From Octopus sinensis (lineage: Eukaryota), in the NCBI RefSeq assembly GCF_006345805.1, contig NC_043022.1, positions 17,360,001-17,424,000 on the forward strand: 64,000 nt of DNA. Reading direction: 5' to 3'. Of this stretch, positions 61,015 to 61,766 are shown one piece after another. Positions within the stretch are counted from its first letter, which is position 1. Each line of letters starts with the position of its first letter. The position numbers and the translations under genes were made by a program. Under the pieces are notes generated by a model. It had not been told where the DNA came from. It made no database searches and was given only the letters and a program-made list of their open reading frames with translations.

Positions 61015-61766
61015 ATTAATAATAAGGTGAGAGAATTAGATACTAATTTAATAGTATATTTATTCAACACCAAGTGGCCTAGTGCTACGAGAAACCTGGA
61101 TTATTATAATATTTTATAACATATTATAATATTTTTACAAAATAAATATAAGAGAGTGGTCACTATATTGCTCACTCTAGCACCAGTTAATCCAAAAGTT
61201 TCAACCACGAAAATACATGTTTCCCATGAAAGCCAGTACGACTGTTAGCTCACACGGACAGGGCAAATAAAAAATAACAAAATACAGATTATTTTGGGAC
61301 AATTGTTTCGCTATTAATGAATTAAATGTAATATTACTTACAAAAAATCCATTTGTAGCTCGTCAGCCAAGACTATCTGGATGAAATCCACTCAATCACA
61401 CGCCAGATTTTACCATAACGATAAATACGCGTGTGGTTCAATTGATTACATCCGACGTTATAATTCAAATGCCCCAACCAACAGCGCGCCAAACTTTCAC
61501 GGAAAACAAATACAGCATTTAGAAATAAATGCAGCATAATTATAATTAATTAATAAGGGTGAGAGAATTAGATACTAATTTAATAGTATATTTATTCAAC
61601 ACCAAGTGGCCTAGTGCTACGAGAAACCTGGATTATTATAATATTTTATAACATATTATAATATTTTTACAAAATAAATATAAGAGAGTGGTCACTATAT
61701 TGCTCACTCTAGCACCAGTTAATCCAAAAGGTTTCAAATTTTGTAAAAATATTATAATATGTTATA
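61015..61766 (-). mobile_element. Penelope-like pseudo-LTR / retrozyme-like non-autonomous element
   Basis: Identical 172-bp direct repeat (61027-61198 = 61559-61730, period 532), 29-bp inverted end (61738-61766 vs 61647-61675), internal hammerhead, embedded in TA microsatellite; no ORF. Confidence 0.7.
61285..61379 (-). ncRNA. Type I hammerhead ribozyme
   Basis: Minus strand: CAGATAGTCTTGG-CTGACGA-GCTA...TAGC-GAAAC-AATT-GTC/CCAAAATAATCTG. Full CUGANGA and GAAA core, G10.1-C11.1 pair, GUC cleavage triplet, stem I 11 of 13 positions paired (one G-U). Confidence 0.85.

Follow-up and report, generated by a model that had tools for sequence, protein, structure and literature searches.

A type I hammerhead motif in a short, probably Penelope-type, intronic insertion of Octopus sinensis

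Introduction

Type I hammerhead ribozymes (HHRs) of metazoans have a helix III of only 1-2 bp with a palindromic loop and depend on dimerization with a second copy lying nearby (PMC4209133, PMC6765202). They are typical of the Penelope-like elements (PLEs) and the non-LTR retrozymes. Here, an HHR motif of this type is described from a stretch of 64,000 nucleotides of the genome of Octopus sinensis (contig NC_043022.1 of assembly GCF_006345805.1, positions 17,360,001 to 17,424,000 of the forward strand), the whole of which is called the window below and supplies the position numbers. The motif is probably the ribozyme of a short non-autonomous retroelement, either a non-LTR retrozyme or a PLE derivative, which has a unit of 533 nt and was inserted in an intron of a GIGYF-type gene.

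PLEs favour (TA)n microsatellites as targets and bear hammerheads in their pseudo-long terminal repeats (pLTRs). Their insertions form partial tandems, the pLTRs, and one end frequently bears a 5'-truncated copy in inverted orientation and a tail of 30-40 bp (PMC8557442). Retrozymes of the non-LTR kind lack autonomy and consist of low-GC, highly self-paired tandem units that are expressed as circular RNAs (PMC7229834; Cervera & de la Pena 2020). According to the literature, the HHR of such an element cuts multimeric transcripts into unit-length RNAs, which are then circularised. Units of 170-400 nt have been given for invertebrate retrozymes (PMC7229834). In a 2026 preprint, retrozymes were derived from the pLTRs of PLEs, consensus lengths of 51-972 bp with dispersed monomers were reported, and about 43% of the Xenopus retrozyme copies were found to be intronic (Li, Clavereau & Pollet, bioRxiv 10.64898/2026.07.22.740005).

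The hammerhead motif

Direct reading of the minus strand gave a complete type I hammerhead motif of 95 nt at 61379..61285, and a descriptor search found it again at the same place; an earlier, sequence-only reading of this DNA had reported an HHR on this strand and at these positions. From 5' to 3', the motif reads CAGAUAGUCUUGG / CUGACGA / GCUA-CA-(AAUGGAUU UUU UGUAA GUAAUA UUACA UUU AAUUCAUU)-AA-UAGC / GAAA / C-AAUU-G / UC / CCAAAAUAAUCUG. The 5' strand of stem I (CAGAUAGUCUUGG, 61379-61367) and its 3' strand (CCAAAAUAAUCUG, 61297-61285) form a helix of 4 bp, a 4x4 internal loop and 5 bp; this helix I is open, with both ends of the motif inside it. The core box CUGACGA (C3-A9, 61366-61360) aligns to the Rfam consensus CUGAcGA and is followed by the helix II hairpin (61359-61310), which was delimited by direct reading and folding. 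The segment 61309-61298 holds the GAAA box (61309-61306), a helix III of only 2 bp (A15.1-U16.1 plus C-G) that closes an AAUU loop at 61305-61299, and the GUC cleavage triplet. C17 is at 61298 and the predicted cut lies 3' of it, between 61298 and 61297, so that the coordinates and the cleavage site of the sequence-only reading were matched exactly on re-reading.

All core positions are canonical (C3 U4 G5 A6 C7 G8 A9, G10.1-C11.1, G12 A13 A14, A15.1-U16.1, and C17 as H17), which the reading and the Rfam alignment both bear out, as had been claimed before; N7 is a C, which is allowed in the hammerhead core. Helix II forms a long hairpin with interruptions (4+8+5 bp), which consists of GCUA/UAGC (4 bp) with the canonical G10.1-C11.1 pair, a CA/AA internal loop, AAUGGAUU/AAUUCAUU (8 bp) and UGUAA/UUACA (5 bp). 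It thus carries an extra hairpin of about 40 nt beyond GCUA/UAGC, of which 38 nt count as a loop 2 insertion for Rfam. The motif is intact as to its sequence, and its self-cleavage is putative.

For the monomer, nearest-neighbour energies gave -17.4 kcal/mol for the catalytic fold versus -24.3 kcal/mol for the minimum free energy (MFE) fold, a gap of 6.9 kcal/mol, and the predicted MFE fold pairs the core nucleotides GACGA with UUGUC. The helix III segment ACAAUUGU is an 8-nt palindrome; its self-duplex, which is what a dimer would form, was predicted at about -7.8 kcal/mol. With its 2-bp helix III and this palindrome, the ribozyme appears to be built to act as a dimer with a second copy.

Both strands of the window were searched with a descriptor written for this analysis, which demanded that the core be exact, that helices I and II each have 4 bp or more and helix III 2 bp or more, and that H17 be present. 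The HHR site was the sole match on the two strands, and it was again the sole match in the window when a relaxed min-HHR descriptor was used. Dinucleotide-shuffled windows, from which the 100-N gap had been removed, gave a mean of 0.01 descriptor matches per window, with a match in 9 of 1000 shuffles. Since this frequency still amounts to hundreds of chance matches in a large genome, the motif alone is not decisive and the context has to decide.

No hammerhead match was found by Rfam at gathering thresholds in the whole window or at E<=10 in a stretch of 701 bases, and both negatives are filter effects. When a stretch of 126 bases was searched, a length at which the filters are laxer, the Hammerhead_1 model (RF00163) matched 61372..61292 on the minus strand over model positions 1-45 of 45, with 27.5 bits and E = 3.1e-5 for the 126-base search. 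The gathering score of this model is 34, which is missed because of the 38-nt insertion in loop 2. In the RF00163 alignment, the loop-2 nucleotides CA...AAUA agree with the Rfam consensus. The Rfam search that the sequence-only reading had named as a check is therefore borne out in part, by a full-length match on 126 bases, and in part not, as the score remained below gathering and the whole window yielded nothing. The motif is real and unlikely to be due to chance, though it stands under the curated cut-off of Rfam.

Structure of the insertion

The motif lies within 755 nt of complex sequence (61766..61012, minus strand) that interrupt a single (TA)n/(TACA)n microsatellite, over 4.2 kb in length (59753..64000+), as seen with Tandem Repeats Finder (TRF), regular expressions and direct reading. 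From TRF and the regular-expression blocks, the 3' flank of the insertion, which reads (TA)n/(TACA)n on the plus strand, occupies 59753..61011, and the 5' flank, of the same microsatellite, occupies 61767..64000 and runs off the window. By self-blastn, TRF, alignment of the two copies and direct reading, the insertion was resolved into an inverted tail of 29 nt and 1.37 tandem units of 533 nt. The tail, at the 5' end (61766-61738, minus strand), repeats the other way round the internal segment 61676-61648, which is also present at 61143-61115; blastn found 29/29 identity in reverse orientation. It is followed on the same strand by one complete unit with the HHR inside (61737-61205) and by a second, partial, pLTR-like unit of 193 nt (61204-61012), which repeats the start of the unit when aligned to the first copy. 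The period of 533 nt was obtained from the direct repeat detected by self-blastn, in which 61737-61542 corresponds to 61204-61012 (196 nt). At its 3' junction, the partial unit ends in the TA-rich stretch TTATTATTAATTAT. The tail and its internal partner (61648-61766, minus strand) might fold, in DNA or in RNA, into a hairpin of 29 uninterrupted base pairs and a loop of 61 nt at the 5' end of the insertion.

Alignment showed that both copies of the unit are identical over about 170 nt, the mismatches being confined to positions beside the junctions; the insertion is thus young, or at least undiverged since its formation. The 755-nt product is a young insertion in sense orientation within the GIGYF-type intron. 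The sequence-only reading, which described the ribozyme by itself, missed that it belongs to a young transposon insertion of 1.37 tandem units in a microsatellite, with one HHR only.

The 533-nt unit has 32.6% GC and no open reading frame (ORF) of more than 58 codons, and the insertion as a whole has 33% GC and no long ORF. The circular fold of the unit was predicted at an MFE of -150.5 kcal/mol versus -106.5 +/- 6.3 kcal/mol for 100 shuffles (z = -7.0), with 65% of the nucleotides paired. No long terminal repeat (LTR), primer-binding site (PBS) or polypurine tract (PPT) was seen on reading the unit, and Rfam matched nothing in it other than the hammerhead. Neither 61737 nor 61012 (which corresponds to 61545 in the unit), where the insertion ends, coincides with the HHR cleavage site, and the junction at the cleavage site is intact, which suggests that the template was a re-ligated circle or an uncleaved multimer.

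Identity of the element

The tandem period of 533 nt, together with the lack of any remnant of a reverse transcriptase or endonuclease gene, indicates that the element is non-autonomous. Several properties of PLE insertions were recovered. The 196-nt direct repeat with its 533-nt period constitutes a partial tandem, the (TA)n/(TACA)n array that is interrupted extends over more than 4.2 kb, and an inverted copy is present at one end as a tail of 29 nt, 1 nt under the 30-40 bp quoted in PMC8557442. An ORF for a reverse transcriptase with a GIY-YIG endonuclease is absent from the element. The highly self-paired circular RNA that is expected of a retrozyme was found in the fold prediction. The sequence-only reading had been right that short-helix-III, palindromic-loop HHRs of type I are typical of PLEs and metazoan retrozymes, which agrees with PMC4209133 and PMC7229834. 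A truncated autonomous PLE was also considered and was rejected, as the tandem period is only 533 nt and no remnant of a reverse transcriptase or endonuclease is present.

The following course of events would account for the insertion. The RNA of the element, in the form of a circle re-ligated at the ribozyme site or of an uncleaved multimer, may have been copied by a PLE reverse transcriptase/GIY-YIG endonuclease at a nick in the (TA)n-rich microsatellite. Priming was probably provided by an AU-rich stretch of the element itself, since the TA-rich TTATTATTAATTAT could anneal to the nicked (TA)n target. Synthesis would then have gone round the unit 1.37 times and finished in a short tail of inverted orientation. 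At the GIGYF locus, the one HHR copy is expected to be nearly silent in the pre-mRNA, and the insertion would most likely be a neutral, dead-end 'monomer'.

A number of observations weigh against this identification. An active retrozyme is defined by at least two HHR copies, whereas this locus has one HHR in 1.37 units and is comparable to a 'monomer' derivative, not to an active retrozyme locus. The 533-nt unit is longer than the 170-400 nt of PMC7229834, while it is within the 51-972 bp of the preprint (bioRxiv 10.64898/2026.07.22.740005). The Rfam score of 27.5 bits is under the gathering threshold of 34, a target-site duplication is unreadable inside the microsatellite, and no PLE reverse transcriptase or endonuclease gene was identified in the window. 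Furthermore, no second copy of the unit was found elsewhere in the window by self-blastn, and pattern scans of metagenome (two patterns), prokaryotic-genome and viral contigs, in public collections that are mostly prokaryotic or viral, gave no copy either. Exact look-ups of two ORFs within the element had no match in a protein index from which the host species is absent, and a protein search with concatenated six-frame pieces of the unit had no match. The multicopy family of the unit is thus a putative one, and the failure to find other members counts against the assignment.

Among the other explanations, an element of the SINE-like, Pol III-driven hammerhead kind (Schistosoma Sm-alpha type), or a satellite repeat expanded by local DNA duplication instead of PLE retrotransposition, is unlikely. 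HHR-bearing SINE-like (short interspersed element-like) and satellite repeats are known in invertebrates (PMC6765202, PMC8490949), and the present element is likewise short, non-coding and partly tandem. On the other hand, ARAGORN found no tRNA-like gene or part of one in the window, Rfam matched nothing in the element besides the HHR, and 1.37 units do not make an array. The clean split of the microsatellite, the 29-nt inverted tail and the 1.37 units fit integration of the PLE type better than they fit unequal crossing-over.

The GIGYF-type host gene

The minus-strand exons of the window, after being cleaned of low-complexity Q-rich segments, were used as a query in a protein homology search and matched 'GRB10 interacting GYF protein 2' with E = 2.3e-6. 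An exhaustive phmmer search with the window's exons gave 74 matches, and all seven of the full-length matches scanned (1183-1363 aa) have a GYF domain according to Pfam, located around residues 420-558. Those with names were from molluscs, namely Pecten maximus (GIGYF2-like), Potamilus streckersoni and Bulinus truncatus. For mapping of the exons, mollusc GIGYF homologues and bat GIGYF2 were compared with the window by tblastn. The matches on the minus strand were 57023-56916 (homologue residues about 664-705), 43793-43650 (about 999-1046), 32082-31960 (about 1131-1185), a further GIGYF exon at 22360-22304, 21657-21538 (about 1180-1220) and 20584-20495 (about 1259-1302), the last with the stop codon in an exon range down to 20483. 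Pfam had no match on the C-terminal GIGYF exons.

For residues 1-660 of the homologues, which include the GYF domain, tblastn gave no match in the window. As the GYF-bearing homologues match it only from about residue 660 to the C-terminus, the GYF domain and the N-terminus must lie beyond 64000, where the sequence-only reading had also placed them. The next exon downstream of the insertion is P/Q-rich and occupies 59155..58836 (minus strand, from the sequence and the ORF listings). It has a polypyrimidine tract and an AG acceptor (ttgtgctgttgcag/ACT) as well as a GT donor (CAG/gtaagg), and from its strand and order it would belong to GIGYF. Because it has an acceptor, an intron precedes it and extends past 64000. 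The same-strand GIGYF intron proposed earlier is therefore upheld by the colinear mollusc homologues on the minus strand and by the acceptor of the next exon, and the distance to that exon, put at about 2.1 kb, was likewise found correct: the cleavage site is 2142 nt upstream of the acceptor. The upstream exons would be situated on the adjacent sequence, and the gene is presumed to be expressed. Two contigs of a related species, L001 (1-1573, Logan SRR11869394) and L002 (1-1401, Logan SRR11869384), which stem from two public sequencing runs, are 79-83% identical to a GIGYF exon/intron region at about 42.6-44.7 kb, with 79-80% identity to 42642-43915; they cover only 42642-44677 of the window, i.e., not the intron with the HHR.

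Effect on the host gene

On the basis of the intronic position, the sequence-only reading had suggested that the ribozyme could cleave the intron co-transcriptionally and affect splicing or output. In this explanation, a functional intronic HHR would cut the GIGYF pre-mRNA and lower or modulate what is made from it, much as has been proposed for the CPEB3 ribozyme. The sense orientation in the GIGYF-type intron and the canonical core are in keeping with it, and precedents exist: from its intron, the CPEB3 ribozyme modulates the mRNA of its host, splicing is aborted by fast synthetic ribozymes placed in introns (PMC10919898), and intronic HHRs are known in amniotes (PMC6765202). The proposal was nevertheless not sustained, and a functional intronic ribozyme is considered quite improbable. 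HHRs with a helix III of 1-2 bp are reported to show no activity or very slow cleavage as monomers and to require a second copy (PMC4209133, PMC7229834, PMC6765202); in vitro, single motifs of this class showed no or very low cleavage, and even the dimers were slow (PMC4209133; axolotl retrozymes in PMC7229834). The HHR in the intron is single, and its predicted catalytic fold is the unfavourable one by the 6.9 kcal/mol given above. As far as PMC10919898 relates the work of Fong et al. (2009), only fast intronic ribozymes disturb splicing, slow ones having no effect. The roughly 2.1 kb up to the acceptor would leave a time window of about a minute or less, according to our own estimate with an assumed elongation of about 2-4 kb/min. 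Intronic retrozyme copies are, moreover, commonplace (bioRxiv 10.64898/2026.07.22.740005), and the young insertion with its identical repeats shows no sign of conservation or domestication of the HHR. The insertion is consequently unlikely to affect the host gene, since it offers a single copy of a dimer-dependent ribozyme.

If retrozymes of the same family were abundantly expressed elsewhere in this genome, one could also imagine that their RNA pairs in trans, via ACAAUUGU, with the solo intronic copy to give an active dimer, in which case the GIGYF pre-mRNA would be cut only at high levels of retrozyme RNA. Such a coupling, by which the output of a translational repressor would depend on the activity of mobile elements, is considered extremely improbable.

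A catalytically meaningless likeness to a hammerhead, arisen by chance in AT-rich DNA, would agree with the descriptor frequency of about 0.01 per 64-kb window (hundreds per gigabase genome), the sub-gathering Rfam score and the failure to retrieve family members, and is very unlikely in view of features outside the descriptor (the 5-bp distal stem I, the 8-nt palindrome, G10.1-C11.1 and the CA...AA loop-2 nucleotides as in Rfam) and of the position of the motif in a transposon-like insertion that bears the hallmarks of PLEs and has a unit with strong self-pairing.

Other features of the window

On the minus strand, 54137-54355 and 54737-55196 gave two colinear Rfam matches to the eukaryotic large subunit (LSU) rRNA (model positions 1498-1884 and 2134-2331, 62.8 and 91.5 bits); these fragments, situated within a GIGYF intron, look like a degenerate ribosomal DNA (rDNA) pseudogene or an rDNA-derived insert. 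An ORF fragment at 52478-52828 (minus strand) has a weak similarity to piggyBac-type transposases (Pfam DDE_Tnp_1_7, E = 0.0017, 18.2 bits, below the cut-off) and was read as a transposon remnant in a GIGYF intron. Broken ORFs at 27000-29130 (minus strand) contain the motif ...YVDDFTITVLG..., suggestive of a degenerate reverse transcriptase, which may stem from a PLE or a LINE; a Pfam search of these RT-like ORFs at 27-29 kb gave no match.

A short interspersed repeat recurs at 548-970, 4421-4753, 5175-5570, about 40183-40734 and 55261-55401, with the translated motif ...QIHSQGFGRS.A..EDTC.RC..VGLNP.P.G. This repeat probably represents a host SINE family; ARAGORN finds no tRNA-like gene in the window. 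At 9617-17705 there is another TA/TACA microsatellite of very large size (about 8 kb). Islands of complex sequence within it, at about 10860-10982 and 13046-13825 (780 nt), are probably other insertions; neither a hammerhead nor internal repeats were found in these two islands, and they do not resemble the 533-nt unit. A run of 100 N at 8618-8717 marks an assembly gap beside microsatellite sequence, and the long microsatellites of the window may be imperfectly assembled.

Comparison with known systems

The kind of locus described here, a retrozyme- or PLE-type insertion with an HHR, is already known, and its peculiarities, the 533-nt unit and the long helix II below the Rfam threshold, are minor. 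It provides a clean and apparently recent example of Penelope-type integration of an HHR-bearing non-autonomous element. With the ribozyme junction intact and the ends off the cleavage site, it also displays the features from which rolling-circle or multimer templating is deduced. For genome scans, it advises caution, as a perfect intronic hammerhead core is usually the footprint of a transposon, and a dimer-dependent HHR should be taken for a gene regulator only where there is evidence that it is conserved or that it cleaves. The curated threshold of Rfam misses the present variant because of its long helix II, which is relevant to the annotation of retrozymes.

The amniote intronic ribozymes, i.e., the HH9 and HH10 hammerheads and the hepatitis delta virus (HDV)-like ribozyme of CPEB3 (PMC10919898), resemble the octopus motif in their sense-strand intron site, and they too are thought to derive from retroelements. 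Conservation across species and cleavage as a single motif set them apart from the HHR reported here, which is of the dimer-dependent type and sits in a young insertion. The Sm-alpha SINE-like elements of Schistosoma share with the present element the form of a short, non-coding repeated element with a type I HHR; unlike in Sm-alpha, no tRNA-like or Pol III part was detected, and the junctions point to PLE-type integration. When compared with Rfam Hammerhead_1 (RF00163), which covers the hammerheads of Schistosoma and of the newt satellite, the motif matches the full 45-position model and all of its core nucleotides, but it differs in the 38-nt loop-2 insertion and in a stem I that is interrupted after 4 bp.

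Like the hammerheads in PLE pLTRs and the insertions of PLEs (PMC4209133, PMC8557442), the locus combines a short helix III and a palindromic loop with a partial tandem, an inverted 5' fragment and a (TA)n-rich target. Unlike PLEs, the insertion is without a reverse transcriptase/GIY-YIG ORF and its whole unit measures 533 nt. The HHR is also nearer to the canonical type I, with its 2-bp helix III and the internal loop of stem I, than to the 'min-HHR' of most PLEs. In comparison with the metazoan non-LTR retrozymes, helix II has the extra hairpin of about 40 nt, and the 1.37 units with a single HHR would permit no release of unit-length RNA by double cleavage. With these retrozymes it has in common the type I HHR and the non-coding, low-GC (32.6%) tandem unit, which is self-paired as a predicted circle, and as an insertion it resembles their dispersed, often intronic 'monomer' copies.

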